Source of the DNA: Macrostomum lignano
Lineage: Eukaryota
Direction: 5' to 3'
Assembly (NCBI GenBank): GCA_002269645.1
Contig: NIVC01001371.1
Span: 62,001 to 126,000, forward strand
DNA: 64,000 nt
This document shows, piece by piece, positions 22,001-42,994 of this stretch (position 1 is its first letter; each line of letters begins with the position of its first letter). The position numbers were made by a program, and so were the translations under genes. The notes under the pieces were generated by a model. It was not told the origin of the DNA and did not search any database. It was given only the letters and a program-made list of their open reading frames with translations.

Positions 22001-25000
22001 GAATGGAAAGATGATTAAATGTTCGAAAAACATGATTTTTGCAAAGGTCAAGCAAAATTCCTTATTTTAAATGCATTTTAAGAATCTCGACTGACTGATT
22101 TGCATTCCAATTGAGATTGCGCCACTTTTCTCTCTCCACAATGCTGGGCCTCAATGCTGGGCCTCAATGCTGGCTGCGTGTGTACATTCTGACCCTGGCT
22201 GACTGGCTGGCGGACTGCATAGACAATTGCTGTTTATAGATTTCACTCAACTGGCTTACTGGTGGAATTACTGAGATGTCAAGGCTTACAAGGGAATTGC
22301 AGGGGTATTGAGAGAAGAAGCTACACGTAGTTTATTTTAAAATTTGTATTGCATTCTTTGTTGGCCCCCCAAAGGGGGCGCTGATTGCTAGGGAAAGTTA
22401 AATTTCGCAGTTCTGTGATATAATAAAAAACAGCAGTTTATTCGAGCAAGTGTATTCGAACAGGAACTTGTGAATTGCTACAGAGAATGAAGAGAAAATG
22501 AGGAAACAGACACTCAAGCGGCATCGGCTTTGACTTCTATGGCTATGGCTTTTATGGCTATGGCTTCTACGGCTATGGCTTCTGCGGCTTTTATGGCTAT
22601 GGCTTCTGCGACTATGGCTTTTATGGCTATGGCTTCTGTGGCTATAGCTTCTGTGGCTATGACTTCTATGGCTATAGCTTTTATGGCTATGGCTTCTGCG
22701 ACTATGGCTTTTATGGCTATGGCTTCTATAGCTATGGCTTCTGTGGCTTTTATGGCTATGGCTTCTGCGACTATGGCTTTTATGGCTATGGCTTCTGTGG
22801 CTATGGCTTCTGTGGCTATGAATTCTTTGGCTATTGTTTTTTATGGCTATGGCTTCTATGGCTATGGCTTTTGCAACTACGGCTTTTGTGACTATGGCTT
22901 CCAACCCCAAGAACTCTCTTGCTTATTTGAAGGTCTTACACTGAAATCGAAACAGTCAAACTTGTAAACAAAAAACAGTACAGCTTTTGTTGAGCTATAA
23001 AAAACGGACACCCAAAGTTAAAAACCAATATAGTACAAAGACAGGTTAGGCCCTCGACAACAAGCAAATTTCAGAGTGAGAAACTCGACTGAAAGACCAG
23101 CAAGCCCAGGATTGGAAACCCAAACATGCAATTAATGGGCCACAGAGTCCTGCCAAGGACTGATGAGAGCCAGCACAATCCGTAGCACGGATGACTATCG
23201 GCTCGTTTAGCATGAGTTTGAATGCCCAACCCTAGGCTTGCAAGTCTCTCAGTCGAGTTTTTTAGTCAGAAATCTGCGTGCTGCGTGTTGTCTATGGCCC
23301 AACCTGTCTTTACTATCTATTGGCCTACAACCTTGGGTGTTACAGCTATGGATAAATACGACGTACAGACAGATACAGAAATTACAAAAATTGACGCAAA
23401 AAGCTAAAACACAAAAAACGCGGATTTACAAAATATTGTCACTAAGACCGTTACTTAACGTTGATGAGAAAATATTAAAATAATAATTTGACGGAATAAA
23501 CTAATTGGCAGGCTAAGCGCAAGGTTGGTGCTACGTGTAATATTGAAAAACTAAAAACGTTTTTGACGCATAGTCAATTCTAAAAAGAGCATTAGAAAAG
23601 TCCTCAGACACTATCGGCTCGCATACTCAAGACTTAAGCAGCGGCAGCAGGTACTCGAATTTCTTCTGAATCCAAATCACATCAGATTCTTTCATCGTCC
23701 TAGCGTCCAGCGCTTTCAAGGACACCGACTTCCACACAGTGTAGTTCCTGCTAGTGAAAAAGTCGATAATAAAGGCCCTGTCGTTGCCCTGCATGTGGCC
23801 GGAGAGGAACTCCATCTGCACTGCCGCTATGGTGAACTGGCTGAACAGGCAGCCGGAAGTTCTCAGGAAGTCGGCCTCACCGCCCTCGATGTCCAGCTTG
23901 ATGACGACGTTCTGCGTGCCGATGAGACCACACAACCGCTCGCTGCGTACCGGCATCACGGGAATCGAGTCGGTCACGGCCCGGCCGAACTTGGTCGCTC
24001 CGCCGACGTTGCAGTCCCCGGGGAAGTTGAGGTAGCTCAGCGTGTCTCCGGACCCGATGAAGTTCCACACAAGAGCAGCGTCCAGCGCAGACGCTTTTAG
24101 GCTCAGGCGGAGTCGAAGCAGGTTGCGGATGTTCGCGTCCAGCGACACGACGGGCAGGCCGAGCCTCGCCGCCAGCAGGCTGTACACGCCAATGTTGCAG
24201 CCAGCGTCCAGGAAGGTCACGTTCGGCACCCTCTGCACCAGTTTCATGGTGGCGTGGACCAGGTCCTTTTCCCAGTGGTGATTCTTCTTGATGGCCTCGG
24301 AGATCATGTCTCTGTCAGGGTAGACGAATATCTTCACCTTGGAATTGCTCGCGTCCAGCAGGTCCGCGGTGGCGCTGCCCGAGCGCACAACCCCGAGGAG
24401 TCTCTCGTCGAAGGGATTCCGCAGTTGGCACAATGGGAAGCGGTCGGCTGTCTTCTCGTACGCGTTGACCCCGCTGCACAGGACGCGCCGCAGAGCCGGC
24501 TGTTGGAAGTCCAGATCGCGCAGCTCTTTGAAGCTTTTGCATCCGGTTTCCACAGTTGAAGGCGGCAGGGTTTTCAGCGGCACCGTCAGGTTCGGGACCG
24601 TTGGCTCAGTTGTGATGACAGCAGCTGACCTGCCAGTAAGGACAGCTTGCTTAGCGAATGCGCCTTCAAGCTGGGTCGCGCTGGCCTCTTGAAGGTCCCT
24701 CAGAGCTTGCAGCTTTGCGAACAGCAGCCCGGCGGCTGTGCAGCCCAGCAGCAACAGCAGCAGCTTGACTTTCTGGTATTGGCGGTGCATCCTGTTTTCG
24801 TTTAATAGCTAACGAATAAGGCAATAAAGAGTCTCCTTGGCCGTGCGAGTCTCATTCTGTTCGTTATATTTATCGCGTCAATTCAGAACAATAGCTGGGG
24901 GATGGGAGCCTTTTAGGAAATATTCCTGTCTATTTTCCTAGGACCGGTTCTCTCCGGTTGCACTCAGTACAGTCACTGGTTGTCATGGAGACCGCATTTT

Positions 25001-28000
25001 ATTTACAATGTAGCTCATACTTCCCCACCACCCCAGCAGCGCTCCTGAAAGGGAGCAGCGCCTTGCAGACAGGCAGCGATCAATAAGCAGTAAAGAGTCG
25101 TGACTAAAATTCAAAACGCTGTTTACAGTCAAATTAGTCCTTCAATCCACGCGCGCTCACTTGTACGTGCCGCCAGCAGTAATTGCAATCTCGTATTATT
25201 TTGCTTTCCTCTGTCTGCAGTGCCTTTTGATTCAGATTTAGGCGCTATGAACGAATTCAAATGTTCATAGCAGTTGGCAAGGGGGATCACTGCCACCTGT
25301 GCCAGTTTGCGCTGATGATAGTGCACGTCCAGCTTCCCTCCCGATTTGAAACTTGCAAAACTAAACTGTTCTCAAACTTACTTGAGAGAACGGTAAGTGG
25401 CAGGTTGAGGATTTTAGTCCCACCTGTAAGGATTAATAAGCATATTTTAATTTCTGGGAAATACCTTTTGCCTTTTGGGTGGAACAGTGTAACCGGTCAA
25501 TAGTATCTGGAGGGGGCTCTAGCCTAGTGGTTAGAGCGTCGGAATCACGACTTGAAGGTCGGGGGTTCGATTTCCGATCCCACTCGGAACAATTTGTGTC
25601 CTTGAGCAAGACACTTAACTCTGCATTGCTTCAGTTCACCTAGCTGTAAAATGGGTGCCAGCATTAGCTGGGGTTATTGAGGGTGTGTGGCGACCCCCCA
25701 GTCCTCGGACTGAACAGCCGTACGCAGCCTTCAGATACGCCGCGCAATAGCTGCGGCTGAGCTGTCGGCTGCACATCCGCTCATCAGGGCAGGTGCAATG
25801 TATTATTACTATCATTATTATATAGCATTCGAAAAAAGATTCTGGACACCCACCATCATAAGCGCAAACTGGCAAATATTCTGATTCTGAAAAAAGCTGG
25901 GTCAACCACCTCCCTCGCTTTTTTAGGTCGTAGTTTGCTGCCTTCCCCATTGTTCCAATTTCTCCTTCCCTCCTCCTGCTTACTTCCCCCAAATTGCAAA
26001 TGGGGTGTGCGTGCCAAATAGGCATTATTTTCCATATTTGCGCATTTAATAAGTCCAGCGACACTCGACAATAGTATGCATTTCTACCCATATTCCTGTT
26101 TACTGCAAGATGCACCACTGAAGACGGCGTGATTTCTCATGCTCTTCTGCGCAAAGTTAATAAATAATAATCAGATATTTTGCAACATTCAGATATTTGG
26201 GAATATTTTTCATACATGATTTCAATTGCCGAATATAAATGAGAATCAGAGCGTGGATTAGACGGCTGATGCTGCAGGACTGGCAGGCCAACCCCCTAAG
26301 GCACAGTGAAGTGTACATGCCTAACGATAAATAAAATTAGGGCCGCTGTACACTCCTGTGTGAGTGCGTGCCTGTGCGTATGACTGCGTACGTATCCGCG
26401 CGCTTGTGTGCCTGCTCAGGACCGCTGGTAAAGTTCAAATGGACGGAAACCGGGGCCACATTAGCGTTCAATTTACTCCAGCTTCCAGTCCACCGTCGCC
26501 ATTTCAAGAAGTCCCTGAAAAATCCCGCCTCGCTAATGATGCTCTTGCTATTCTCCCCCAATCTTTTTCCCTGTCAGCCTCCCAGCATCTCTCCTCCCAG
26601 CGCTTTGCCCCTCTGCTCACTGACCATGTCTTCAGCACTGAGAGGCAGTGGCTGTGTGCACCCTGGCAACTGCATTCAACCATAGCTAGTAAAGGCAATC
26701 GCAGTGGATAATAATTTCTTTAAAAATCAGCACCAAGCTAGCAGTCTTGCGATAAGCAAGGAGCAAAAATTATTCATGGAAAACAATTAAAAAAGCACAT
26801 TTTCTTTTCTTAAGCGCATTTCCTTCTTTCCTTCTTCCTTCTCCAAGACAGCAAGAAAACATCCCCAAGACAGCAAGCATCCCCCCAGATAGCAAGCATC
26901 CCCCCAGATAGCAAGCATCCCCCGGATAGCAAGCATCCCCCAGATAGCAAGCATCCCCCAGATAGCAAGCATCCCCCAGATAGCAAGCATCCCCCAGATA
27001 GCAAGCATCCCCCGGATAGCAAGCATCCACCCAGATAGCAAGCATCCACCCAGATAGCAAGCATCCCCCGGATAGCAAGCATCCCCCCAGATAGCAAGCA
27101 TCCCCCGGATAGCAAGCATCCCCCAGATAGCAAGCATCCCCCCAGATAGCAAGCATCCCCCCAGATAGCAAGCATCCCCCGGATAGCAAGCATCCACCCA
27201 GATAGCAAGCATCCCCCCAGATAGCAAGCATCCCCCGGATAGCAAGCATCCCCCAGATAGCAAGCATCCCCCGGATAGCAAGCATCCACCCAGATAGCAA
27301 GCATCCCCCCAGATAGCAAGCATCCCCCAGATAGCAAGCATCCACCCAGATAGCAAGCATCCCCCAGATAGCAAGCATCCCCCGGATAGCAAGCATCCCC
27401 CAGATAGCAAGCATCCCCCGGATAGCAAGCATCCACCCAGATAGCAAGCATCCCCCCAGATAGCAAGCATCCCCCGGATAGCAAGCATCCCCCCAGATAG
27501 CAAGCATCCCCCGGATAGCAAGCATCCACCCAGATAGCAAGCATCCCCCCAGATAGCAAGCATCCCCCAGATAGCAAGCATCCTCCCAGATAGCAAGCAT
27601 CCCCCCAGATAGCAAGCATCCCCCAGATAGCAAGCATCCACCCAGATAGCAAGCATCCACCCAGATAGCAAGCATCCTCCCAGATAGCAAGCATCCACCC
27701 AGATAGCAAGCCTACCCCGGATAGCAAGCATCCCCCCGGATAGCAAGCATCCCCCCGGATAGCAAGCATCCCCCCAGATAGCAAGCATCCCCCCAGATAG
27801 CAAGCATCCCCCGGATAGCAAGCATCCCCCGGATAGCAAGCATCCCCCCAGATAGCAAGCATCCCCCCAGATAGCAAGCATCCCCCGGATAGCAAGCATC
27901 CCCCAGATAGCAAGCATCCCCCAGATAGCAAGCATCCCCCGGATAGCAAGTATCCACCCAGATAGCAAGCATCCCCCCAGATAGCAAGCATCCCCCAGAT

Positions 28001-31000
28001 AGCAAGCATCCTCCCAGATAGCAAGCATCCCCCCAGATAGCAAGCATCCGCCCAGATAGCAAGCATCCCCCAGATAGCAAGCATCCACCCAGATAGCAAG
28101 CATCCACCCAGATAGCAAGCATCCCCCAGATAGCAAGCATCCACCCAGATAGCAAGCCTACCCCGGATAGCAAGCATCCCCCCGGATAGCAAGCATCCCC
28201 CCAGATAGCAAGCATCCCCCCAGATAGCAAGCATCCTCCCAGATAGCAAGCATCCCCCGGATAGCAAGCATCCCCCCGGATAGCAAGCATCCGCCCAGAT
28301 AGCAAGCATCCCCCAGATAGCAAGCATCCCCCGGATAGCAAGCATCCACCCAGATAGCAAGCATCCCCCCAGATAGCAAGCATCCACCCAGATAGCAAGC
28401 CTACCCCGGATAGCAAGCATCCCCCCAGATAGCAAGCATCCCCCAGATAGCAAGCATCCCCCAGATAGCAAGCATCCTCCCAGATAGCAAGCATCCCCCG
28501 GATAGCAAGCATCCCCCGGATAGCAAGCATCCCCCAGATAACAAGCATCCCCCAGATAGCAAGCATCCCCCGATAGCAAGCATCCCCCAGATAGCAAGCA
28601 TCCCCCGGATAGCAAGCATCCCCCGGATAGCAAGCATCCCCCAGATAGCAAGCATCCCCCAGATAGCAAGCATCCTCCAGATAGCAAGCATCCTCCCAGA
28701 TAGCAAGCATCCCCCCAGATAGCAAGCATCCCCCAGATAGCAAGCATCCACCCAGATAGCAAGCATCCACCCAGATAGCAAGCATCCACCCAGATAGCAA
28801 GCATCCACCCAGATAGCAAGCATCCCCCCAGATAGCAAGCATCCCCCAGATAGCAAGCATCCCCCAGATAGCAAGCATCCACCCAGATAGCAAGCATCCA
28901 CCCAGATAGCAAGCATCCGCCCAGATAGCAAGCATCCACCCAGATAGCAAGCATCCCCCGGATAGCAAGCATCCCCCCAGATAGCAAGCATCCCCCCAGA
29001 TAGCAAGCATCCTCCCAGATAGCAAGCATCCACCCAGATAGCAAGCATCCCCCGGATAGCAAGCATCCCCCCAGATAGCAAGCATCCCCCCAGATAGCAA
29101 GCATCCCCCGGATAGCAAGCATCCCCCCAGATAGCAAGCATCCCCCAGATAGCAAGCATCCCCCGGATAGCAAGCATCTACCCAGATAGCAAGCATCCCC
29201 CCAGATAGCAAGCATCCCCCAGATAGCAAGCATCCTCCCAGATAGCAAGCATCCCCCCAGATAGCAAGCATCCCCCAGATAGCAAGCATCCACCCAGATA
29301 GCAAGCATCCACCCAGATAGCAAGCATCCACCCAGATAGCAAGCATCCACCCAGATAGCAAGCATCCACCCAGATAGCAAGCATCCCCCAGATAGCAAGC
29401 ATCCCCCAGATAGCAAGCATCCCCCAGATAGCAAGCATCCACCCAGATAGCAAGCTTCCCCCGGATAGCAAGCATCCCCCCAGATAGAAAGCATCCCCCA
29501 GATAGCAAGCATCCCCCAGATAGCAAGCATCCCCCAGATAGCAAGCATCCTGCAGATAGCAAGCATCCTGCATATAGCAAGAATCTACGAGTATAAATAG
29601 CAAGCATCCTGCAGATAGCAAGCATCCTGCATATAGCAAGAATCTACGAGTATAAATAGCAAGCATCCCTGGATAGAGAAATCCCATACATGTAGGTACA
29701 TGTAGCCAGTCCCCCCCTCTCCCTAATAGCAAGTAACCCCTCCCCCTCGAGAGCAAGCATCCCCCCGATAGTAAGCAACATCAGACAGCAAGTAGCTAGT
29801 GCAAATATTTCCTCCACTAATCCAACAATCGCTTTCTAAGGTCGTGCAATAATCCATACCTCAGCTAGCGCAAAATTCTCTTTTTCATCAGCGCAATAAT
29901 CCGCTTCTCAGCTAGTTAAATAATCATTCTCTCATCTGGTGGAATCATCCTCTCGTAGAAATGAAGTTCTGCGACCAAAATTTTTTATTAGAGGCAGGGG
30001 CTGTGTGCACCCTGGCGCCCTTTAAGCGACATTGTCACAACCGGCGAGAGGCATTGCTGCCCATTCCGCCGACTCCCCTGAGCAGGCACACAAGCGCGCG
30101 GATACGTACGCAGTCACACGCACAGGCACACACTCACACAGGAGTGTACAGCGGCCCTAACTATTTATCTTATTTATCTTTAGGCATGTACATTTCACAG
30201 TGCCTTGAGGGTTGGGCCTCAATGACGTTAATTGCACGAGCAGAGCCAAGCCGAGATTCCAATTCAGCCCCAAATTAATGTGACTGCACTTGGAATCGAG
30301 CCTGGGCCGCTGGCACATCAGAGCGCCAGGCTGGACTACTGGGCTACGGCACCCCTCTTTACCAGTGGTTCTTTTTACTTGTGGTCTCCTCATCAACAGC
30401 GATAGAGGCTATTGTCATGATCAATTCCATCGTTCGCTCGTACTTTCCTGGAAACTGCCCAATTCCCTCACAGGTTTTTCAGATTCAAGCAATGCCATTA
30501 AAATCACAGACCATCCAAATTCACGGAGCTGCCAATCCTGTCTGAGCTGGTCACCGAGGGCCAATCTTTGACTAATAGTTCGAATCGGCTGCGGAAGCTT
30601 CGGGCGTCGTCGATCGCGGCGTCGCCATAGCGACCGGAGTCCGGCAGGAGGAAGTGCGAATGGTTGTGGTCCAGGCTGATGCTGGATTGATCATCGCTCT
30701 CCATCAAGTACTTGGCCGGGTAGCAGCCCTACGAGTAATTTTTTTTGAAGATTGCAAATTTTTCCGCCTGTGGATGCATAGTCTACTGATGGTAAGTAAC
30801 AGCGCTAGAATTATATTTTCATTCTTTTCAGGCATATCTTAGCAATTTACCATTCAGGCGAGTCACATTGGGTACAGTTTCACAGTGTCCTCTCGAATCC
30901 ATAAAAGACAGTTTAAACAAAATAAACGAATCACACAGGAGTGAATATCGTTTAGTGAATCTCACAGTGGGGAATCTCACAGGGACCGAATCTCACAGGG

Positions 31001-33056
31001 ACCGAATCTCACAGAGACCGAATCTCACAGGGACCGAATCTCACAGAGACCGAATCTCACAGGGACCGAATCTCACAGGGACCGAATCTCACAGAGACCG
31101 AATCTCACAGAGACCGAATCTCACAGAGACCGAATCTCACAGGGACCGAATCTCACAGGGACCGAATCTCACAGAGACCGAATCTCACAGGGACCGAATC
31201 TCACAAGGACCGAATCTCACAGTTGCGAAAATAAGTAAGGCGATTCCTATGGTGCCAATCTCTCACCATGTAGGTGTCTGAAGCCAGGCTGGGCCTGTTG
31301 GCCACCCGGCCCCAAGGGCTGATGCCGATGGCCAAGATTGAGTCTTCGCCGTAGGCATCGCAATAATCTCGGACAGCCTGGCCGGACAGCTCGGACAGGC
31401 CGCCGTATCCGTCCGTGACGACCCAGGCGCCTTCGGGCAAGATCAGTTGCTACATGTAGACTTAGCTGATTTGAGTCTGAGACATGCAATGGCCAAGAAC
31501 TTGATTTCACATACCCGATCCACCGGCCGCCTTCCACAGGCCCTTCTGCCAGACGCTCTTGAAGGCAGTCTTGTCGATCTCAGTGCCATAGACGCTGATC
31601 ACCAGGGAGGGTTTGACGAGGCCCCAGTGCCCCGTTAGCACCGACATCAGGGCTTCGTCCGCTGTGCTCTGGCTGACTCGGAAGTACTGTAAAAAAGTAC
31701 GTTGCTTTTTGTTGCCATTTTGCTTTTTATAGAGTTATTAAACAATAGACTTTATTAAATTACCTCCCTTTCCCTCATCTGTCTTAAACTGTTCTCATTC
31801 TCTCTTACCTGTTCTCATACTCTCTCATCTGTCATCATACTGTCTCACCTGTTCTCATACTCTTTCACCTGTTCTCATAGTCTGTCACCTGTTCTCATAC
31901 TCTTTCACCTGTTCTCATAGTCTGTCACCTGTTCTCGTACTCTCTCACCTGTTCTCATACTCTTTCACCTGTTCTCATAGTCTGTCACCTGTTCTCGTAC
32001 TCTCTCACCTGTTCTCATACTCTTTCACCTGTTCTCATAGTCTGTCACCTGTTCTCGTACTCTCTCACCTGTTCTCATACTCTTTCACCTGTTCTCATAT
32101 CTGTCACCTGTTCTCGTACTCTCTCACCTGTTCTCATACTCTCTCACCTGTTCTCATACTCTCTCACCTGTTCTCATACTCTCTCAACTGTTCTCATTCT
32201 CTCTTCTCCTGTTCTCATACTCTCTCACCTGTTCTCATACTCTCTCACCTGTTCTCATACTCTCTCACCTGTTCTCATACTCTCTCACCTGTTCTCATAC
32301 TCGCTTATCTGTCATCATACTCTGTCACCTGTTCTCGTACTCTCTCACCTGTCCTCATACTCTCTCACCTGTTCTCGTACTCTCTCACCTGTCCTCATAC
32401 TCCTCACCTGTCCTCATACTCTCTCACCTGTTCTCGTACTCTCTCACCTGTCCTCATACTCCTCACCTGTCCTCATTTTCCCTCACCACTCTTATAAGTC
32501 AACCCCAACCCAATCACCAGAATATTTTTCTTTGGATTTTCCACCTCTCGCCCTAACTTTCACATTCCAATCCACACACCTGAGCTGTGTTACCCAATCC
32601 GGAGAATTCCATTTCGCCGAAGCAGTTGTTCACCAGCTCGACTGTGTCACCTTCGCGACTCCACGCGTGCCGGCTGGGCAGCTGAGAGGCTGGCAGCTCG
32701 TGCGTGTCCGCCGGCTGGCCGCACGGACACACCGGGGAGGTCGAGCCGTTGCTACGGGTGTCGTTAGTTGTATAACTCTGTTAGACCCGATAAGACACCC
32801 GTCCAGCACTCACACAGTCTCACGCAGACTCCATAAGACACCCATCCAGCATCCACACAGTCTCACGCAGACTCCATAAGACACCCATCCTGTAACAAAG
32901 TCTGTGTGGCTTGCAGAGAGAAAAAAACCTCTTAGAGCTGGCCAAGCCTAGCTCTCTCAATAAATACCAGTTTATTTTCCAGCCTGACTAGGCTGACCAA
33001 TCAGCCGCTACCTCTGGCGTGCTCGCGCTCCAGAGTATGCACATGCGCGAGTACAA

Positions 33057-33090
<34 letters not shown>

Positions 33091-33895
33091 CCCCCCATCC
33101 CCCACTCTGCACAGAAAGCGAAACGCAGTCACCACACATCCAGCATCCACACAGTCTCACGCAGAGCCCATAAGACAACCATCCAGCACCCACACAGTCT
33201 CACGCAGACCCCATCAGACACCCATCCAGCACCCACACAGTCTCACGCAGACTCCATAAGACACCCATCCAGCATCCACACAGTCTCACGCAGACACCAT
33301 CAGACACCCATCCAGCACCCACACAGTCTCACGCAGACCCCATGAGACGCCAATTCTACCTCCACTCCATTCTCAAACTCGTAAAGACAGCTTCTCTTAT
33401 GCTACTCATTCATTTTCTTCCTACTCACTCAAGGCCGGCCTCTAACAGCGGCTGCGGCGGCATCCGGTAGGTGCACACCAGCCGAGTCAAGCGCAGCTGC
33501 GCCGGCATCTGGGTCAGCAGGGCCCCAGTCTCCGGGCTCACCAGCTGACCCAGCAACTGAACGGCCGGATTTATCTCGCCACCATCGTCCGATCTTTCAT
33601 CCTCCAGATAATTGAGAATCGTTTTGCCTTCCTGCAATGCGGGTGATTGATTTGCAACAGTAATATTTAGGGTAGAGCAGTGAACTAACTAAACAACTAA
33701 CTGACTAACTAACTGACTGACTGACTGACTTACTAACTAACTAACTAACTAACTAACTCTAACTAACTAACTAACTAACTCTAACTAACTAACTAACTAA
33801 CTCTAACTAACTAACTAACTCTAACTAACTAACTAACTAACTAACTAACTGACTAACTAACTAACTAACTAACTGACTGACTGACTGACTGAATT

Positions 33896-33938
<43 letters not shown>

Positions 33939-33939
33939 G

Positions 33940-33990
<51 letters not shown>

Positions 33991-33991
33991 G

Positions 33992-34030
<39 letters not shown>

Positions 34031-34103
34031 GACTGACTGACTTACTAACTAACTAACTAACTAACTGACTAACTAACTAACTAACTAACTAACTGACTGA
34101 CTT

Positions 34104-34162
<59 letters not shown>

Positions 34163-35626
34163 GACTGTCTAACTAACTAACTAACGAACTAACTATCTAG
34201 TAAATGCTTAAGACTTTGTTAGACGCACCGAATCAGGCAAATCAAGCGGCAGCAGTCGAGCCTCGTCTGCAAGGCCGTCAGTGCCGGTTGAGCAGCTGCG
34301 GCAGCAGGCCAAGATCAGCTCAGCTACACAGGAGGCACTCTCGGCCGCCAGTGCCCAGTGCAGGGGCGTGCGACCGTGAGAACGGTCGGCCAAGGCTCGG
34401 CCAGCCGGCCTGGTTGCCGGGGCCAGCAGGCGCAAGGAGACCGGGTCTCCGGTGCGGCAGGCCACGTGCAACGGCAGCTGACCAGCCTGGATTGGTGGAG
34501 CGGATGCTGCTAATGCATGCATAGCGGGTATCGCGAAAGGGTAACTTTCTGTGCGCTAACAGGGGGTGAGAATTTTGTCTGTACCCTGTATTTCACCAGT
34601 TCGTTCTTAATGGCTGTCTCATGGGGTCTGCGTGAGATTGTATGGGTGCTGGATGGGTGTCTGATGGGGTCTGCGTGAGATTGTATGGGTGCTGGATGGG
34701 TGTCTGATGGGCTCTGCGGGAGACTGTATGGGTGCTGGATGGGTGTCTGATGGGGTCTGCGTGAGATTGTATGGGTGCTGGATGGGTGTCTGTTGGGCTC
34801 TGCGGGAGACTGTATGGGTGCTGGATGGGTGTCTGATGGGCTCTGCGGGAGACTGTATGGGTGCTGGATGGGTGTCTGATGGGGTCTGCGTGAGATTGTA
34901 TGGGTGCTGGATGGGTGTCTGATGGGGTCTGCGTGAGATTGTATGGGTGCTGGATGGGTGTCTGATGGGGTCTGCGTGAGATTGTATGGGTGCTGGATGG
35001 GTGTCTGATGGGGTCTGCGTGAGATTGTATGGGTGCTGGATGGGTGTCTTATGGGGTCTGCGTGAGATTGTGTGGGTGCTGGATGGGTGTCTTATGGGGT
35101 CTGCTTGAGATTGTATGGGTGCTGGATGGGTGTCTTATGGGCTCCCAATTACGCTCGGACCCTGTTAATTGGACACTCCTCGTTCCTCACAAGTCTTTGC
35201 GTCGATCCTTACCTGATCCACCTGATTGGAAAACTGCTCGTTCCGTTCAATTAGTCTACGGATCACGTGATAGTTCCGCGTGACGACGGCTGCGTGCATC
35301 AGCGGACAGTCGTCGAGGACAGCCGGCGGCGGCGATTGCGACCCCTCCGTCAGGGCTGGCGCGCCGCGGCAGGCGAGTCGCGCCCGTTCGTCCTCGGTCA
35401 GCTCTAGACGAAAGCTGGCGCCGGGCGACAGGAGTTGCTGTCGCTCGAGCTCCTGGAATGCATCGTTGTCTCCGCGAAGAACGCTGCCGATATCCGTTAC
35501 TGAGGATGTTGTTGTTTTTGTTGTTGTTGTTGTTGTTGCCGCGGCCTGGCGAGCGTTACTGCCGGTCAGAGCGGCGCTCTCGTTCAACTCCAGACTGTCG
35601 GTGAGACGAGTCTGAGAAGAATTCAT
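318..35626 (-). CDS. TRPM2-like (TRPM/TRPS superfamily) cation channel: ankyrin repeats + SLOG/MHR1-4 + 6TM + TRP box + coiled coil + NUDT9-H, ~1,900 aa
   Basis: Exons joined by GT-AG with matching phase: 35213-35626, 34229-34486, 33429-33631, 32580-32775, 31515-31686, 31267-31430, 30555-30728, 30363-30408 (tentative), 17287-17957, 14717-14831, 13420-13663, 13078-13306, 12543-12796, 10366-10501, 9278-9721, 7866-8061, 6574-6703, 5615-5805, 4722-5056, 1697-2073, 318-1062. Total 5694 nt, divisible by 3. TRPM motifs: CPCG..H, KAAGGSGAWVVTDG, LDHNHSHFLL, FYFAPVVRF, YIRILQVFSIHVSLGPKVVMI, YFQVFGE, NVLLLNLLIATFS, WTLQRY..REY. Exact orthology not established. Confidence 0.93.
1440..1693. repeat. 48-bp minisatellite (~5 copies) abutting the donor at 1696
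   Basis: Unit ATGTCCGATTTCCCTGGGACAAAGTGTCACTGTACCACTCGGGACGAA. Confidence 0.92.
2234..4662. repeat. 21/23-bp minisatellite (CACTAGAACAGACACAACAGT)n with higher-order duplications
   Basis: Direct reading. The variant pattern near 2274 recurs near 3924. Confidence 0.97.
4722..10501 (-). CDS. TRPM-like gene, transmembrane, pore, TRP-box and coiled-coil exons
   Basis: S1 FIYST|LAYLIFLGIYSYVML; S4 LFIFYIRILQVF; pore TSYFQVFGEL; S6 LTNVLLLNLLIATFS; TRP box HWTLQRYMIMREYTERSPIAPP; heptads RIDNVERRLEELAEMVANL. Confidence 0.93.
5890..6560. repeat. 21-bp G-rich minisatellite (GGGGGGTAGGCTATCCACAAT)n
   Basis: Direct reading. Confidence 0.96.
6840..7690. repeat. 43-bp minisatellite
   Basis: Unit GTCACTAGCATGATTATCTTTGTTTTCTCAGTGTGATGCCCCT. 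Confidence 0.96.
8160..9230. repeat. Degenerate ~16-bp minisatellite (CAATGTGTCTATGACT)n
   Basis: Direct reading. Confidence 0.92.
9800..10165. repeat. Degenerate minisatellite (ACAAGCTCGAAACTTC / AAGACTCACAAGTTTAAAAC)n
   Basis: Direct reading. Confidence 0.88.
10578..12520. repeat. Bipartite 16-bp minisatellite: (CCCAATGTGTCTGCTT)n, then (CCCAATGTGCCTATAT)n
   Basis: Sharp switch of unit at ~11755. Confidence 0.98.
13325..13398. repeat. (AGAGT)n microsatellite filling a short TRPM intron
   Basis: Direct reading. Confidence 0.93.
13659..14500. repeat. 23-bp minisatellite (TTCCACTGTGGGTCATCTGCACC)n overlapping a TRPM 3' splice site
   Basis: On the - strand each unit reads GGTGCAGATGACCCACAG|TGGAA. 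Confidence 0.97.
14935..16958. repeat. 47-bp highly homogeneous minisatellite (~43 copies)
   Basis: Unit GAGTT(T/G)TAGACTTAGAATCTAGAGTGGAAACTGCTGACTAAACCATG, with no spacers. Confidence 0.98.
19445..19645. repeat. 38-bp minisatellite (~5 copies)
   Basis: Unit GTGCTAATCGGGGTGAGCAGCACTAATTTGAGGGAGCT. Confidence 0.92.
20310..20666 (+). mobile_element. SINE family B (~350 bp, tRNA-like head, AATAAAAA tail), copy 1
   Basis: Near-identical copies at 26287, 29981, 57338 and 58945. B-box-like GGCTCGATTCC and an A-rich end. Confidence 0.8.
21300..22391 (+). mobile_element. Two Helitron-like non-autonomous 3' ends downstream of TTGCTGAGA(C/T)GTCAAGGCT minisatellite units
   Basis: Shared tail AAGCTACA(C/T)GTA...TCTTTGTTGG...GCGCTGATTG-CTAG at 21873 and 22391. 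The second copy has a GC hairpin (CCCCC-CAAA-GGGGG) ~10 nt before CTAG. Confidence 0.5.
21305..21735. repeat. 28-bp minisatellite (GGGAATTGCTGAGACGTCAAGGCTTGAG)n
   Basis: Direct reading. Related degenerate units at 19900-20220, 22265-22300 and 39100-40035. Confidence 0.95.
22530..22890. repeat. (CTATGG)-based compound microsatellite
   Basis: Direct reading. Confidence 0.9.
23627..24790 (-). CDS. FkbM-family (Methyltransf_21) SAM-dependent methyltransferase with N-terminal signal anchor, 387 aa, intronless, nested in a TRPM intron
   Basis: Uninterrupted ORF. Hydrophobic anchor KVKLLLLLLGCTAAGLLFAKL; motif I TFLDAGCNIGVYSLLAA; VVSLDAN; FkbM-type VIKLDIEGGE and VQMEF. Confidence 0.9.
   Translation of the reverse strand: MHRQYQKVKLLLLLLGCTAAGLLFAKLQALRDLQEASATQLEGAFAKQAVLTGRSAAVITTEPTVPNLTVPLKTLPPSTVETGCKSFKELRDLDFQQPALRRVLCSGVNAYEKTADRFPLCQLRNPFDERLLGVVRSGSATADLLDASNSKVKIFVYPDRDMISEAIKKNHHWEKDLVHATMKLVQRVPNVTFLDAGCNIGVYSLLAARLGLPVVSLDANIRNLLRLRLSLKASALDAALVWNFIGSGDTLSYLNFPGDCNVGGATKFGRAVTDSIPVMPVRSERLCGLIGTQNVVIKLDIEGGEADFLRTSGCLFSQFTIAAVQMEFLSGHMQGNDRAFIIDFFTSRNYTVWKSVSLKALDARTMKESDVIWIQKKFEYLLPLLKS
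25512..25700 (+). mobile_element. tRNA-derived CORE-type SINE
   Basis: A box TAGCCTAGTGG and B box GGTTCGATTTCC, followed by TGTGTCCTTGAGCAAGACACTTAAC...CTGTAAAATGGG, similar to the MIR/CORE central domain. Confidence 0.8.
26287..26420 (+). mobile_element. SINE family B, internal fragment
   Basis: Shares AGGCACAGTGAAGTGTACATGCCTAACGATAAATAAA...GCCTGCTCAGG with copy 1. Confidence 0.75.
26855..29700. repeat. 18-19-bp minisatellite (GATAGCAAGCATCCCCCCA)n, ~2.8 kb
   Basis: Direct reading. C-run length varies between units. Confidence 0.98.
29981..30354 (-). mobile_element. SINE family B, apparently full-length copy
   Basis: Reverse complement of copy 1, extending to the head GCCGTAGCCCAGTAGTCC. 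Confidence 0.8.
30955..31222. repeat. 16-bp minisatellite (ACCGAATCTCACAG(G/A)G)n
   Basis: Direct reading. Confidence 0.95.
31790..32475. repeat. 20-bp minisatellite (CTCACCTGTTCTCATACTCT)n
   Basis: Direct reading. Confidence 0.95.
32785..33345. repeat. Two blocks (32785-32890, 33135-33345) of a 43-bp minisatellite, inverted relative to 34620-35140
   Basis: CAGACACCCATCCAGCACCCACACAGTCTCACGCAGACCCC units. Confidence 0.92.
33429..35626 (-). CDS. TRPM-like gene, N-terminal exons encoding ~3 ankyrin repeats
   Basis: Spliced translation reads PLMHAAVVTRNYHVIRRLIE...DQ|AGQLPLHVACRTGDPVSLRLL...HGRTPLHWALAAESASCVAELIL...DS|EGKTILNYL, matching the ankyrin G-x-T-P-L-H-x-A consensus. Phases 0/0/2 join it to the MHR1 exon. 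Confidence 0.8.
33690..34195. repeat. (CTAA)n/(CTGA)n tetranucleotide microsatellite
   Basis: Direct reading. Confidence 0.97.
34620..35140. repeat. 43-bp minisatellite (~12 copies)
   Basis: Unit GATGGGGTCTGCGTGAGATTGTATGGGTGCTGGATGGGTGTCT. Confidence 0.96.
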
Positions 35627-38009
35627 CGCCTGTCCGATGTGAAACAAAAATTTTAAGCTCTGTTCATTAGTTTATTAACAGTTAATCACAGCAATACCAC
35701 AGCAACTATTTTCACCCGAGGTTTTGATACCCAACATCTCACCTCAACAACTGTTTACTTCATCAAACGCGCTAATACAGCATCTAAACTTGTCGAGCGA
35801 GTTTGACGAGTACAACGAGATGTTGACACAAATTTAAAAGAGAAGTTTTAAGAGTACATTGGCATCAATTACGATAGGATTTTGTAATCATGATGGACCA
35901 TTTAGAACCTTTAGTACTGTATCAGCGAAATTCATTTGGTTTCGCTCATGTGTAAAGTCAAGAGGGTGAACTTCCCATTGTTCTGCTTTAAAATATGCAT
36001 GCATTCACCCAAAACGTTGGGAAGAACTCACAGATCCGACCCGAATTCTTACGCGTGGTCCTCTCGTCCTCTGTGTCGGCTAAAATTTGGCTGCAAAAGC
36101 TATACCGAAGATGCTACCTGACGCCTTCCGCAGCAATCTATAGCCAACCAGTTGGGTCTCCGGTTAAGATTGACAGATCAGAGTCCAATATTCTCAGTAC
36201 TCAGCTGGATTTGCTCTGTATAAATAGGTATTTTATAGCTGGACCAATCGTTACTGGGTGCAGGTGGTGCGATGTCAGGCTAATTTTCTCTCAAAAGCAT
36301 TAGCAAGCCTAAATGGGAAGCAAATTTATCCATAATGGCGTGAGTACTCGCCCAAAAAATGCCTGTGCCCACAACAAACTGACTGGGGCCGCTTAGCAAC
36401 CAACGCAAGCCAGACACGGATTGAAGCCAGACAGAGCCAGAAAGAGTTTAGGGAGGCTTTGACTGATATTTGCACAGCAAATCAGTTGCCGATTATTAGT
36501 GAACTTTTTGGTCCAATTCAGCTAGCGGAGAAGCTACTCAGTTTTATTGCTTCGGCTGAAATAGCACCGAGCAACTCTGGCTCATTCGACAATTGTGTAC
36601 GAGTAGTCCAATGAGTAAGAGGACAATGTTTATGCGCACAATTTTGGCGATAAAGAGTTGAGGTCATTGTGAGCAGGATGCTATTACGACAACCATTGAT
36701 TGGATTGGGGTCAAGAACCGTTACTATATTTGTTTACGCTGAAAACAATGCATCACACCCTGTGACTGGCGCGAGTGTTCCGGCCATTGTTCAGCAAAGC
36801 TACATGCTGAACAAGTGCATTGCATAACGTTTGTATTTTGCCCAAAAATACAACAAAATACAATGCAAAGATAAGGAGGATTGAATTGGATAGTTAATAA
36901 ATGTAGGAAAGGAGTCACGTGATGAAATTTGTACTTGGGCCAAATTACATTAGGGCAGTTAAGTTAAGCGTAAAATCTCCGGGTTTTATAGCAAATTTAA
37001 ACTTGGGACCAAGTGAACTAACAAAACCGTAGTAGGGACCGCGGCGAAATTAATGCCACGACTGCAAAGTAGAGCGGACGTACTAACAGCCTAATGACGC
37101 GTATTGATTGATTTTTCAACTTGAAGGATTCCCTAGTCTACGGTAAGTGATTTAAGACTTAATGCATTGGCTCCGGCTGTGCAAACTGGAAAGTTTGAAT
37201 GAAAAAAAAAATAATTTCTACAAAAAAATTCAGAGACGAAGTGCTCTCTTCAAGCATTTTGTTTCAGATAGCGAGTGCATTCATTGGCATTTAATAAAAC
37301 CCAACTTGCTTTGCAAAGAACAGATATGAACTAATGGTTATAATACACTTGTTAACAATGATTGTAGCCTCATTGATAGCAATTAATTTCGGGTTAAACG
37401 GGCCTAGAGTGCACTTAGTTCGTCGTACCCAAATGGGACTTGATCTGGTGTCGCATATACTCAGGAAGATGTGAGCTGTACTCCACGAGGTATTCAGCAA
37501 TGTCGCAGTTCCCTGACAAGTGACAAAGTGTCTCTCTGAATAACTCTCTATTGTTTGCAAGTTTCTTTCCTTCAAATACAAAGTACATGAAGTTCTATGC
37601 CTGCAATCATTAATTTTAAAGCTGGTTAGATGATCATAATCAAAACTCAAAATTCTTTTTTTTCCATGTAAACTATACTAAAATGAGTGATTTGTCTGTA
37701 TCTATGCGACTGTATCAATCGATTTTCATGAAACTTGCACCGTTCGATCAGACGTTTTTTCTCGGTAACAGTACATGCGTCATGGCTAACGCGACTTGCT
37801 CTCGCATCACAATGGCTTGGTTGGATTCCATGTGGAGCCACATTAATTTGTGGCTTGTGCAGAAAAATGGCCTTACGGGTCTGTGCGATTCTCGCGCATG
37901 AGGGCCAAACTCCCAAGGTATCCGAGTGCGTGCTCAGGGGTCAGCGGAATGGACGTGACTGCGGGTCGGCTATCGCCTCACTAAAAAACAAACTTGTGAG
38001 CGTGCTGAG

Positions 38010-38630
38010 CGTTGCTGCAAGCGTCGGCCTGGTGCTCTGCGTTGCCGGACGACATCAAGGCTACGATTTTCTGCCGAGGTGCCGATGGGCAGGTGACGAA
38101 GCTTCCGCACTGTCAGCAGTTCGTCCACCTCGGCGGTCTGGTGCCTGACGTTTGCGAGGATCTGCGACGTCGCCGCGGACTTGCCTGGGCTGCCTTCCGT
38201 TCCGTGATGGCTGTCCTGCAGTCCGAGGCCCTTGTTCCAAGCGATGATCGAGACCGTCCTGCTGTACAACGCCGAGACCTGGACGCTGACAGACTCACTC
38301 GAGCAGCAGCAGGTTGATGTGGCTCACACTGGCCTGCTGCGCGCCGCCTTCAAGACCAATGCGGCACTCTAGCTATCGCCGCACCGGACTACCACATCCC
38401 AGCGAACTGTTGCGCCGTCGGCGACTGCAGCTGGCAGGCCAAATCATCCGCGCCGAGTCCTACTATACCCGCAGCTATCAATAGTTTAGGAGGTTCTGTT
38501 GCTGACGCTGCAGGCACCCTACCAGCGGGACAGGCGCGCACTAGGCGTTTCATCGACTGCCTGCTGGCTGATGCCGGCGCTCTGGTGCGGCCCTACATTC
38601 GCGACCAGGCCCTGAAACGCGCCCTGTTGA
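38010..38630 (+). mobile_element. Degenerate 3' fragment of an RTE-type non-LTR retrotransposon
   Basis: Frameshifted translation FVHLGG...LRRRRGLAWAAF...LFQAMIETVLLYNAETWTLT...LLRAAF matches the post-RT region of RTE/L2-like LINEs (YLG..RI..A..AF..VLLYG.ETW.LT). Stops and frameshifts are present. Confidence 0.8.
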
Positions 38631-40807: not shown

Positions 40808-42994
40808 TTAATCGAGCTTCCTGGTTGCTAGGGCGGCATACTTTCTGTGCGATTTGTACCACAGAGCCATGGGAATAGCGATCGAAGGCAGCGACATCAG
40901 GCCGAATGTCAGCCATTCGGTCTGAAATAAAAAAACCATTTATTAATAAATATAAAATGTTGATTAAAGCTTCTTTATTGAAGTCTGAAGCGATTCTCCC
41001 TTGCTCCACGGCATGGAAATAGCGAAAATTCAGTAAGCTTCGCATGATTCAGCAATTTCCACTGTGCACAGCTAACGCTTGAACTGAAAGCTGTGGGGTT
41101 TGAGGGCTCGGGGGGGGGGGTTGAAAATGTACACTCGCGGCAATGTACCTAGATAGAATTCTCTCATGGGGTGTGGGGTGTGAGTGTACATTGTTGGCAC
41201 GTGGCGGCATGCGTCCGCTACTTCGCTAGCTCACTTTTTTTGTCCTGTCCAGTTTAACAATAAGTGAGAGATCTGAGGATTTTCTTTACGCTGTATTGCC
41301 TCTTCCCTAATTCAGCTACGAGACCAAGCAAGGCTTATCTTGAGTTGGTGCGTACAGACATTGCTGTGGGAAACAATATTAAGCATTGTAAAAATGTAAC
41401 AACTGCATAATTCTTGGCTTGGCGTTGACCATATGTACCTTTAGGCATTATGAGCAGGGGCGTCACCATAGATTTTATGGTGGCGGTAACAAAGCCAATA
41501 TTCCAAGAATTCTACATGACCTAAATTCCTATATTTTTTGGGAATCGATGTTGTTAGCACTAATTTTGGCGCCGCAGACACTCATTTTGGCGCCATAGAC
41601 AGTCACTTGGCGCTACAGACAGGCACTCATTCTGACCCCAAAGGCGCTTATATTTTGGCGACCTGAAGCAGAACTATTGATTTCCATAAGGGTTACAAGG
41701 TGGGGTGGTGGGAGTGGGGACAAAGCATTAGCATGTATCCCCATAGCTTTTGATTGGAGGCATGTCCCCCTGTCCCACTATAGTTGTGACGCCTCTGATT
41801 ACGAGTAAGACACCTTAAAGCCTACAAATATGGGCATTAAAAGTAAAAAACAAAATTTTGAATCGATTGAAATGGGCTGTCATTAATGTGTGGTGTTGAG
41901 TGTGAGATTGAGATTAGAGTGTGTTGTCATTAATTTCGAAGAAAACCTTGGTTGAACTAGATGGGTCATTTGCACTATCTGTGTTGTATAGGCATCATAC
42001 ATATATTTTGCTAACTTGCTAACTAACAATCCGCGGGACATCCAGGTTCAGACCAATCCTAGAACTGATTTTAACTAGACAATAGATTTTAGTATAGTGG
42101 ATTCTCTAGGCCAAGCAGACTAAACGACAGATCCAGAATTTTTCCCCGAGGTGGTCACTCGACCCTTTTTGACCCCCCGTCCATAAAAACAGACAGCGAT
42201 AAAGACATGCATGCTCAGACGACTTAAAGAGAAAAATTATTAAAAGACTAGTGATAGATTTTTACAGCTATGAGGAAGTCACAATCCTGATTTTCTGGAG
42301 GGTCTTTTACTGACTTGATCTGTTATTGGTCAATGAGACGCAGAAGTCTCACTCACTGAGATTGGAGCCCCCCTATACATCATGACACTGAACTCACGGC
42401 ATGAGCGGAAAACTGTCGATCGTAAGCGGCTGTATCATAAATAACCACTTCTCCAAAGCCGCTAGTCTGACCAACTGTGAAGCCGCGAGAGTCCTCGCTG
42501 GCTCTGTAGCGAACAGTAGCCTGGCTAACATTGAACATGACACTTTGCAGCGGCGTCAGCACCACCGAGTGACTGACATTGGCGCCTGCCGGCAGACTGG
42601 CCCAACGGGCGCGCAGCAAGCCGGCCTTCAATTCGAAATAGTCGCTAGGGAAGCCCTCCTCTTCCAGCTGAAGATTCCGAGCAGCCCTGTATTCGCCAAG
42701 TAGGCATTGCTTTAAAGTATTAAAAATACAAATCTAGAATAACAATAAATGCAAATATCCAGCTACTAAGATCTGCATGCATGCACTCTGTTAAAAACAA
42801 TTTGAATGGAAGATTGACGAAACTTACTTTGAACCAACATTGTACAAATCGTATTGGACTGTAATGTCTTTTCCCTTGACAACTAAGTTGTTGAGAATTG
42901 TTTTGAGAGCCACAATTTGAGCCCTTTCTTCCGTGTCAGCCATGCAGGACATGACCATCATCAGCAGAACTAGAGCAGAACTGATTTTACACAT
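40808..42994 (-). CDS. SSR2: Translocon-associated protein subunit beta (TRAP-beta), 189 aa, 3 exons
   Basis: Exons 42828-42994, 42398-42686, 40808-40921 (570 nt). Signal peptide, then LKTILNNLVVKGKDITVQYDLYNVGSK, ANVSHSVVL.PL, YDRQFSAH, EWLTFGLMSLPSIAIPMALWYKSHRKY, collinear with human SSR2. Confidence 0.96.
41455..41797. mobile_element. hAT-type MITE (343 bp) in SSR2 intron 2
   Basis: TIRs CAGGGGCGTCAC / GTGACGCCTCTG. 8-bp target duplication ATTATGAG / ATTACGAG (7 of 8 identical), the hAT hallmark. Confidence 0.85.

Follow-up and report, generated by a model that had tools for sequence, protein, structure and literature searches.

Channels of the TRPM2 type, known from the solved structures of human (6PUS, 6MIX), zebrafish (6DRJ) and Nematostella (6CO7) proteins, are ordered as SLOG/MHR1-2, MHR3-4, six transmembrane (TM) segments, a TRP helix and a NUDT9-homology (NUDT9H) domain, and have no N-terminal ankyrin repeats. 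N-terminal cytosolic ankyrins ahead of a six-TM channel are found in TRPA, TRPN (NOMPC), TRPV and TRPC, which are without SLOG or NUDT9H and in which the repeats abut the pre-S1 linker. Here we describe a gene of the flatworm Macrostomum lignano, Mlig025325.g2, encoding a protein with the TRPM2 order of domains preceded by ankyrin repeats. It lies within the 64,000-nucleotide stretch analyzed here (the window), which spans positions 62,001 to 126,000 of the forward strand of contig NIVC01001371.1 in assembly GCA_002269645.1; all coordinates below are those of the window. The protein resembles the ankyrin-bearing TRP channels in the position of its repeats ahead of the six-TM region, but has a TRPM-type TM core, and its repeats number only about four and are far from the membrane domain in sequence.

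The absence of ankyrins from canonical TRPMs, which a preliminary description of this locus took as its starting point, agrees with the published surveys. Himmel et al. (2020) reported TRPM and TRPS to be ankyrin-free in a sampling of 14 phyla without Platyhelminthes, and searched TRPS explicitly for ankyrins without finding any (PMC7306681), which contradicts the mention in the preliminary description of ankyrin repeats in TRPS. A 2026 study of TRPM domain gain and loss found only divergent ankyrin-like repeats within MHR3/4, in a sampling that took in molluscs and annelids and left out flatworms (PMC13143021). Among flatworm channels, TRPM_PZQ (the praziquantel target, Smp_246790), as represented by its presumed orthologues, falls in the same flatworm-only, NUDT9H-bearing clade as the window protein (97% bootstrap), the 'nudix subclade' of PMC11731825, with the TRPM_PZQ-like proteins in a clade B that is ankyrin-free and the window protein in its sister group. 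TRPM_MCLZ (Smp_333650) is a flatworm TRPM whose N-terminus has 'ankyrin-like' repeats (PMC10788528, PMC11731825), but it has no SLOG/MHR1-2 (PMC10788528) and no NUDT9H, and its modules have been likened to those downstream of SLOG in other TRPMs, whereas the window protein has canonical Pfam ankyrins upstream of an intact SLOG.

We found no paper in the literature that discusses a TRPM with ankyrins fused ahead of SLOG, and since the studies of TRPM evolution sampled no flatworms this arrangement is an undescribed variant, although it is annotated in databases. The gene and its Ank_2 match are already on record there but have not been studied. The architecture is thus visible in databases and perhaps in a figure of a 2024 review, the legend of which gives "ankyrin repeat domain" among the annotated domains of schistosome TRPM paralogues, and the text of which describes the remaining schistosome paralogues as SLOG plus channel and not yet deorphanised (PMC11731825). 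The novelty, for which the preliminary description called for a check, is reduced by these database records and also because the protein is no one-off chimera but one member of a clade conserved among flatworms.

Short exons, GT-AG introns and numerous intronic satellites characterize the window as eukaryotic DNA, and it contains the entire Mlig025325.g2 gene as 23 exons on the minus strand, running from 35626 down to 318 with the stop codon at 320-318; all 23 are bordered by AG and GT. Exon 1 (35626-35213, 414 nucleotides) begins at the ATG at 35626, the first ATG past an in-frame stop at 35671, and encodes residues 1-138, consisting of a low-complexity N-terminus of ~100 residues and ankyrin repeat 1 (the Ank_2 and Ank_4 matches start at residues 109-110). 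Exon 2 (34486-34229, 258 nucleotides, residues 139-224) encodes repeats 2 and 3, and both of its flanking introns are of phase 0 and lie at repeat borders. Exon 3 (33631-33429, 203 nucleotides, residues 225-292) contains a degenerate fourth ankyrin-like repeat, a linker, and the beginning of the Cys-rich TRPM N-terminus, and exon 4 (32751-32580, 172 nucleotides, residues 292-349) carries the CPCG..H motif and the pre-SLOG motif NNCFGEMEFSGLGNTAQ, which includes NNCFGEMEF, and continues into SLOG exons 5 to 7. The phases after exons 1, 2 and 3 are 0, 0 and 2, with AG/GT at each internal border, and the joined frame is free of stops.

Translation of the 23-exon chain gives a protein of 1889 residues that is 100% identical to GenBank PAA68780.1 (BOX15_Mlig025325g2, Macrostomum lignano "hypothetical protein"), retrieved by exhaustive profile search and cluster look-up. 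Some of the Pfam coordinates given below refer to a preliminary 20-exon model of 1838 residues, which was built from open frames and splice-site scoring and is without the exons of 54, 87 and 12 nucleotides. The Mlig_3_7 annotation from which PAA68780.1 derives is a genome-guided, RNA-seq-based transcriptome that combines StringTie, TACO and de novo assembly with trans-splice and poly(A) boundary calls and TransDecoder open reading frames (PMC5730564), and the ankyrin-to-SLOG exon chain is therefore transcript-derived and not ab initio. The 12-nucleotide micro-exon in PAA68780.1 seems easier to explain by transcript evidence than by ab initio prediction. The splicing of three ankyrin exons in frame into the CPCG..H exon, as proposed in the preliminary description, is thus upheld by the coordinates, splice borders, identity to PAA68780.1 and domain match, and its estimate of ~1,900 residues was close. 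Two near-identical copies, g1 and g3, both lack the N-terminus and show two amino-acid changes over 460-1273 residues.

One database sequence, P0001 (UniRef, from the ML2 assembly), joins a GC-rich stretch at ~38.6-37.9 kb to the ankyrin exons and was considered as evidence for additional 5' exons, but it is frameshifted and retains one intron. It was ruled out as such evidence because the corresponding part of the window (~37973-38592, minus strand), which is GC-rich and has open frames that overlap one another in each of the three phases, has neither a gene in the Mlig_3_7 annotation nor a Pfam match.

In order, the window protein consists of ~100 disordered residues, the ankyrin repeats, a linker with the Cys-rich N-terminus, SLOG/MHR1-2, MHR3-4, six TM segments and a pore, the TRP helix, a probable coiled coil, and a NUDT9H domain without a Nudix box. 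A Pfam scan recovers Ank_2, LSDAT_euk, TRPM2-like and Ion_trans. On the joined N-terminus Ank_2 matches residues 109-196 (E=1.4e-11, 45 bits against a cut-off of 27.3), with Ank, Ank_3 and Ank_4 likewise above their cut-offs, and on the whole protein Ank_2 matches the same residues with E=6.9e-9. By eye there are four repeats within residues ~105-256, three of them good (DDCPLMHAAV..., AGQLPLHVACR..., GRTPLHWALA...) and one degenerate (EGKTILNYLE...), and the phase-0 introns 1 and 2 coincide exactly with repeat starts. A linker of about 90-100 residues, including the Cys-rich TRPM N-terminus, separates the repeats from SLOG.

Two paralogues elsewhere in M. lignano, P0003 (Mlig003066g1) and P0004 (Mlig009389g3), are 43-47% identical to the window protein and share its Ank_2-SLOG-TRPM-Ion_trans layout, and their ankyrin regions align to that of the window protein; the remaining M. 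lignano TRPMs that were scanned contain no ankyrin module. In the P0003 gene, introns 1 and 2 occupy the same positions and have the same phase as introns 1 and 2 of the window gene, and the sizes of the downstream exons (172, 164, 229, 444, 196 and 130 nucleotides) agree as well. Exon 3 of P0003 is a single exon containing both a fourth ankyrin-like repeat and the pre-SLOG motif NNCFGEVEFPGLGNTAQ, and the junction between the two in this paralogue is therefore independent of any splicing inference; window exon 3 is homologous to its first half.

P0003 and P0004 are near-identical by eye over their first ~430 aligned residues and then diverge, with 68% identity from the ankyrins to S6. This pattern suggests gene conversion, a chimeric duplication, or a chimera of assembly or annotation.

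The same architecture is present in parasitic flatworms. An exhaustive search of 1.84 billion representatives identified fluke proteins labelled "TRPM2" as the closest relatives outside Macrostomum (about 583 bits), and Ank_2 matches lie upstream of SLOG in Clonorchis sinensis KAG5447154.1 (1e-7), Opisthorchis viverrini XP_009171463.1 (4e-9) and Schistosoma mekongi KAK4474030.1 (1.8e-8). These proteins have the Ank_2-SLOG-TRPM-Ion_trans layout of the window protein and its SLOG loop changes, although the identity over the N-terminal half is about 25-28%. The derived loops W..TDG and (Y/H)G are common to the window protein, P0003, P0004 and all three fluke proteins.

The gene of the S. mekongi protein spans 92 kb, and threading the protein through it and mapping the introns onto the alignment revealed shared intron positions across the ankyrin-SLOG junction. 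Alignment columns 59 (phase 0), 149 (phase 0), 283 (phase 0), 340 (phase 1) and 396 (phase 0) have introns in the window gene, P0003 and S. mekongi, and columns 223/226 (phase 2) and 487 (phase 1) have them in the window gene and S. mekongi. The S. mekongi gene contains extra introns relative to the window gene, and two of its ankyrin repeats are single 99-nucleotide exons of phase 0/0. Single-repeat exons of this phase are a classic signature of shuffled repeats.

Tapeworms apparently retain remnants of the ankyrin module. A hidden Markov model built from the Macrostomum and fluke ankyrin regions matches the N-termini of Mesocestoides (6e-6) and Anoplocephala (1.8e-5) proteins, and has zero matches in the sister clade or the outgroups; the Pfam Ank match in Mesocestoides is 4.4e-4, just below the cut-off. 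In a word-indexed search with an ankyrin-SLOG profile, unrelated ankyrin proteins dominated the results and no further orthologues emerged, including any from S. mansoni or planarians. One word-indexed search returned only P0001, which is the same locus, and a bacterial ankyrin protein; another gave eight matches. P0263, a candidate for a further ankyrin-bearing TRPM on account of its ankyrin and 'TRPM2-like' Pfam matches, was rejected, since it is a common ankyrin protein with repeats that match the MHR3 model weakly.

The ankyrin-SLOG fusion is real and old and not a local accident, because the paralogues share the layout, the junction lies in a single exon of P0003, there are orthologues in flukes, and introns are shared with S. 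mekongi. As the preliminary description held, the ankyrin and TRPM exons form one gene for a protein combining ankyrins, SLOG, a TRPM channel and NUDT9H; the transcript-derived GenBank model supports this together with the comparative evidence.

In a neighbor-joining tree of 144 relatives over 970 trimmed columns, which did not include TRPS sequences, with bootstrapping on a 31-taxon subset using Kimura distances, 21 flatworm representatives form one clade (97% in the subset). This contains an ankyrin branch of Macrostomum, fluke and cestode proteins (80% with the cestodes included) and a sister branch (99%) of ankyrin-free Macrostomum genes, a S. rodhaini paralogue, and proteins of 1760-2328 residues from S. 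spindale, Clonorchis, Paragonimus and Echinostoma. From their size and tree position the long proteins of the sister branch are taken to be TRPM_PZQ orthologues, and those scanned with Pfam (S. spindale, 2242 residues; Clonorchis, 2116 residues) have no ankyrin match. The window protein falls in the ankyrin group and outside the PZQ-like clade B. The best non-flatworm matches are mollusc and brachiopod "TRPM2" proteins and the family is therefore beta-type; every named relative and solved structure among the best matches is TRPM2-type, and the TRP helix of the window protein is canonical. On these comparisons the window gene belongs to a flatworm-specific, ankyrin-bearing subfamily of TRPM2-like (beta-type, 'nudix') channels, sister to a clade with the presumed TRPM_PZQ orthologues. 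In the tree the window protein thus shares a flatworm-only clade with the PZQ-like proteins, and a reading of it as unique is wrong or at least unsupported, since fluke and tapeworm proteins group with it.

One of the PZQ-like gene models, P0019 (Clonorchis sinensis KAG5451156.1), has an N-terminal vinculin-family domain (PF01044, E=4e-65), most likely a gene-model fusion with a neighboring gene.

Exon 8 (17287-17957) encodes the end of SLOG and MHR2/3, followed by the MHR3 exons 9 (17026-17079, 54 nucleotides, with a 54-nucleotide exon at the same place in P0003) and 10 (14717-14831), exon 11 (14537-14623, 87 nucleotides), exon 12 (13420-13627; MHR3/4, part of the Pfam TRPM2-like domain) and the MHR4 exon 13 (13078-13306). 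The TRPM2-like domain (PF25508, MHR3/4) matches residues 760-917 of the 1838-residue model (E=2.6e-44) and 699-964 of PAA68780.1 (1.5e-51). Exon 14 (12543-12796) encodes the pre-S1 region with a low-complexity insert, exon 15 (10366-10459) the pre-S1 helix, exon 16 (9278-9721) S1 to the S4-S5 segment, and exon 17 (7866-8061) S5 and the pore helix and filter (YFQVFGEL). Exon 18 is the 12-nucleotide micro-exon (7762-7773, VTTL), which falls within the extracellular pore loop that links S5 to S6; its splice sites are an AG acceptor and a GTAAGT donor, and identity with PAA68780.1 depends on it. Exon 19 (6574-6703) encodes the pore-loop cysteines and S6, and exon 20 (5615-5805) the TRP helix (HWTLQRY...REY). 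In P0003 the S5-pore (196 nucleotides) and pore-S6 (130 nucleotides) exons are adjacent, and there is no counterpart of the micro-exon between them. Exon 21 (4722-5056) encodes the rib helix and a probable C-terminal coiled coil, predicted from a heptad-like stretch visible at residues ~1483-1538; Pfam TRPM_tetra has no match.

Ion_trans matches residues 1059-1323 of the 1838-residue model and 1106-1374 of PAA68780.1 (E=5e-12). Among solved structures the TM region is closest to Nematostella TRPM2 (nvTRPM2, 6CO7; E=1.5e-45), in an alignment that is continuous over nvTRPM2 residues 837-1142 and includes HWTLQRY and the PPL motif. Residues E1147, Q1150, N1167 and D1170 (exon 16) and E1389 (exon 20), the last being the fifth ligand, align with and are identical to nvTRPM2 E893, Q896, N918, D921 and E1110, which we take to be the Ca2+ ligands at S2, S3 and the TRP helix; all five Ca2+-site residues are identical in TRPM2. 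The channel core and the Ca2+ site look functional from this alignment. The protein thus has the SLOG/MHR1-2, MHR3/4 and six-TM TRPM-type pore with TRP helix by which TRPMs are recognized, and departs from the textbook trait of no canonical N-terminal ankyrin repeats, which is descriptive and not a requirement of membership.

The two nucleotide-related modules have both been altered. In SLOG, exon 5 (31515-31686, 172 nucleotides, with this size and phase also in P0003 and S. mekongi; SLOG/MHR1) has ISVYGTE in place of the usual ISVTGG loop, exon 6 (31267-31430) has WVVTDGYGG in place of the usual TGG loop, and exon 7 (30512-30728), which contains the NHSHF motif, is followed by a 12.5-kb intron. 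LSDAT_euk matches residues 348-589 (E=2.6e-34), and human TRPM2 is the closest solved structure (phmmer, E=9e-36), in which the glycine-rich loops are ISVTGGA and IITGGSHTG compared with ISVYGTE and VVTDGYGG here. The change from TGG to YGT in the window protein, YG(T/D) across the ankyrin clade, and that from TGG to TDG are found throughout the clade, where LSDAT_euk scores are 75-119 bits, versus 263-285 in other TRPM2-like proteins. Exon 22 (1697-2073) encodes a linker and the N-terminal part of NUDT9H, and exon 23 (318-990) its core, which keeps LWGPNH and DDRVNGDNAW but no longer has the Nudix box. Among solved structures the C-terminus is closest to human NUDT9 (1Q33; phmmer, E=5e-21, query 76-328), and it also matches TRPM2 NUDT9H domains, but the catalytic REx2EE helix of NUDT9 and nvTRPM2 is replaced by a Ser/Ala-rich stretch (CLPSCIGPASVSASSASSS), and Pfam NUDIX has no match in the window protein, versus 4e-8 in the TRPM2-like P0005. 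With the Nudix box gone, hydrolysis of ADP-ribose (ADPR) would certainly be lost, and NUDT9H would be at most a binding or structural module.

These features bear on the serious rival to a change of ligand, namely that the protein is still a TRPM2-type channel gated by ADPR or a related nucleotide, with the ankyrins as an accessory for trafficking or anchoring. The retained NUDT9H fold with its conserved LWGPNH and DDRxNxDNAW motifs, a SLOG that is closest to that of human TRPM2, an intact site for the Ca2+ co-agonist, and the TRPM2 names of all the best non-flatworm relatives are consistent with this reading. The lost Nudix box, the change of both glycine-rich loops across the ankyrin clade and the reduced LSDAT_euk scores argue against it, and we regard it as possible rather than probable. 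As to the suggestion in the preliminary description that the channel may not be gated by ADPR, the missing Nudix box makes a loss of hydrolysis clear, and a loss of nucleotide binding is not borne out.

The alternative advanced in the same description, that the channel may be gated mechanically, which would make the repeats a spring or tether as in NOMPC/TRPN, is improbable. The ankyrin repeats of NOMPC, 29 in number, are an established gating spring, but no result here supports such a role for the window protein, which has about four repeats and a TRPM2-like TM core and Ca2+ site. An AlphaFold model of residues 96-600 from a six-sequence alignment (mean predicted local distance difference test, pLDDT, 59.5; predicted template modelling score, pTM, 0.52) has the repeats as helix pairs at pLDDT 56-78 and the SLOG fold at 65-86, and model residues 142-239 fall below 50, such that some 90-100 residues between the repeats and SLOG are predicted to be poorly ordered. 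Both modules are recognizable in the model, where a flexible tether appears to connect them, and at this pLDDT the way in which they are placed relative to each other is not to be trusted.

It is very unlikely that the gene is a decaying or non-conducting paralogue, whether an incipient pseudogene or a regulatory subunit. SLOG and NUDT9H are divergent, and redundant copies are numerous in M. lignano, which became polyploid recently (PMC5730564), but the reading frame is intact across 23 exons, copies g1 and g3 have accumulated just the two amino-acid differences noted above, conservation extends to the pore, the TRP helix and the Ca2+ site, and the subfamily is kept in Macrostomum, flukes and tapeworms. 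Least credible of all is an artefact of the gene model, in which ankyrin exons from a separate upstream gene or a polycistronic precursor were joined to the TRPM exons by transcript assembly: M. lignano does make polycistronic precursors that are cut by trans-splicing (PMC5730564), the sequence directly before the ATG at 35626 resembles a splice acceptor, and the exon chain is known from a published annotation, but the frame is open through every junction, exon 3 ends within the conserved Cys-rich TRPM N-terminus and exon 4 completes its phase-2 split codon, the same fusion is present in both of the divergent paralogues and in flukes, whose genomes other groups annotated, a single P0003 exon covers ankyrin-like and TRPM parts, and intron positions and phases over the junction are common with S. 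mekongi.

We consider it likely that Mlig025325.g2 is a whole gene for an ankyrin-SLOG TRPM of a conserved flatworm subfamily, and that its product is a cation channel that depends on Ca2+ and uses the ankyrins to dock a partner, which is our best guess for its function on sequence grounds. The channel would be tetrameric and non-selective among cations and, like TRPM2, 4, 5 and 8, would require intracellular Ca2+ at the conserved S2-S3-TRP site. NUDT9H is predicted to be incapable of hydrolyzing ADPR, and because the SLOG nucleotide loops are altered clade-wide the channel is probably activated by a ligand other than that of TRPM2. The short ankyrin module would be flexibly tethered at the margin of the cytosolic layer, where it most likely serves to dock a partner with a regulatory or scaffolding role; a role as a force-transmitting spring is unlikely. 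The presence of the module presumably reflects a single gain, through the shuffling of phase-0 repeat exons, that preceded the split of Macrostomorpha and Neodermata. For the fuller evolutionary account, of a TRPM subfamily sister to the praziquantel-target clade in which a single gain of ankyrins upstream of SLOG preceded the separation of free-living and parasitic flatworms, with the SLOG loops and Nudix box remodelled alongside, the chances seem to us about even.

Several points weigh against this interpretation. Support for the exon chain comes from a published annotation based on short reads and from comparative evidence; the AlphaFold model is of low confidence and does not reliably place the ankyrin module. 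The tree is distance-based, from one alignment, and gave one Kimura-distance warning, and the core ankyrin group without the cestodes has a bootstrap of only 30%. The cestode ankyrin matches are below Pfam cut-offs, and the PZQ-like label reflects length and tree position. Ca2+ dependence, partner docking and the change of ligand are moreover all deduced from sequence.

Almost all the long introns of the gene are occupied by tandem satellites, which differ from one intron to another and have units of 16-59 bp in up to 150 copies. A 43-bp satellite occupies 34610-35141 in intron 1 (12.4 copies) and is present in inverted orientation in intron 3 (33133-33354 and 32783-32890). The inverted arms are 222 nucleotides long, 88-92% complementary, and flank exons 2 and 3, and in the pre-mRNA they could pair so as to loop out both ankyrin exons by skipping or back-splicing; skipping of exons 2 and 3 together (461 nucleotides) would disrupt the reading frame. 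Other intronic satellites lie at 2226-4662, 5938-6562, 6822-7704, 10577-12509, 13654-14503, 14898-16961, 26860-29644 (a 19-bp unit in 150 copies), 31789-32487 and 33683-34199, and several of them give rise to open frames that are long but spurious, in each of the three phases.

The 12.5-kb intron 7 also contains a 393-codon open frame (23630-24808, minus strand), on the same strand as the TRPM gene, with an N-terminal hydrophobic stretch and a weak match below the cut-off to an FkbM methyltransferase (PF05050, E=6e-4). It is unannotated in GenBank and could be a nested gene, a repeat-derived open frame, or a chance occurrence. The upstream neighbor (~40808-43051, minus strand) encodes translocon-associated protein beta (TRAP-beta; PF05753, E=6e-22), annotated at 191 residues, and exons of a phosphoinositide phospholipase C are located at ~60885-62407 on the minus strand (PI-PLC-Y, E=6e-20; C2, E=5e-11), in a gene that probably extends past the high end of the window.

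The usual account of TRPM as the TRP family without N-terminal ankyrins is broken by a phylum-wide flatworm subfamily, and if the interpretation given here is correct that textbook statement is wrong for a whole phylum. The value of the finding is moderate, in that it concerns a variant of domain architecture and no new kind of protein, but the fusion is old enough for intron positions to be common to Macrostomum and Schistosoma, and the clade with the praziquantel target TRPM_PZQ has this subfamily as its closest relative. The fluke members of the subfamily belong to the schistosome TRPM paralogues listed as not yet deorphanised in PMC11731825, and would be unexplored paralogues of a proven anthelmintic target, in which gating or localization may proceed via an ankyrin-bound partner instead of ADPR. 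M. lignano is a laboratory flatworm amenable to transgenesis and RNA interference, and so offers a harmless system for studying the roles of the ankyrin module, the remodelled SLOG and NUDT9H.

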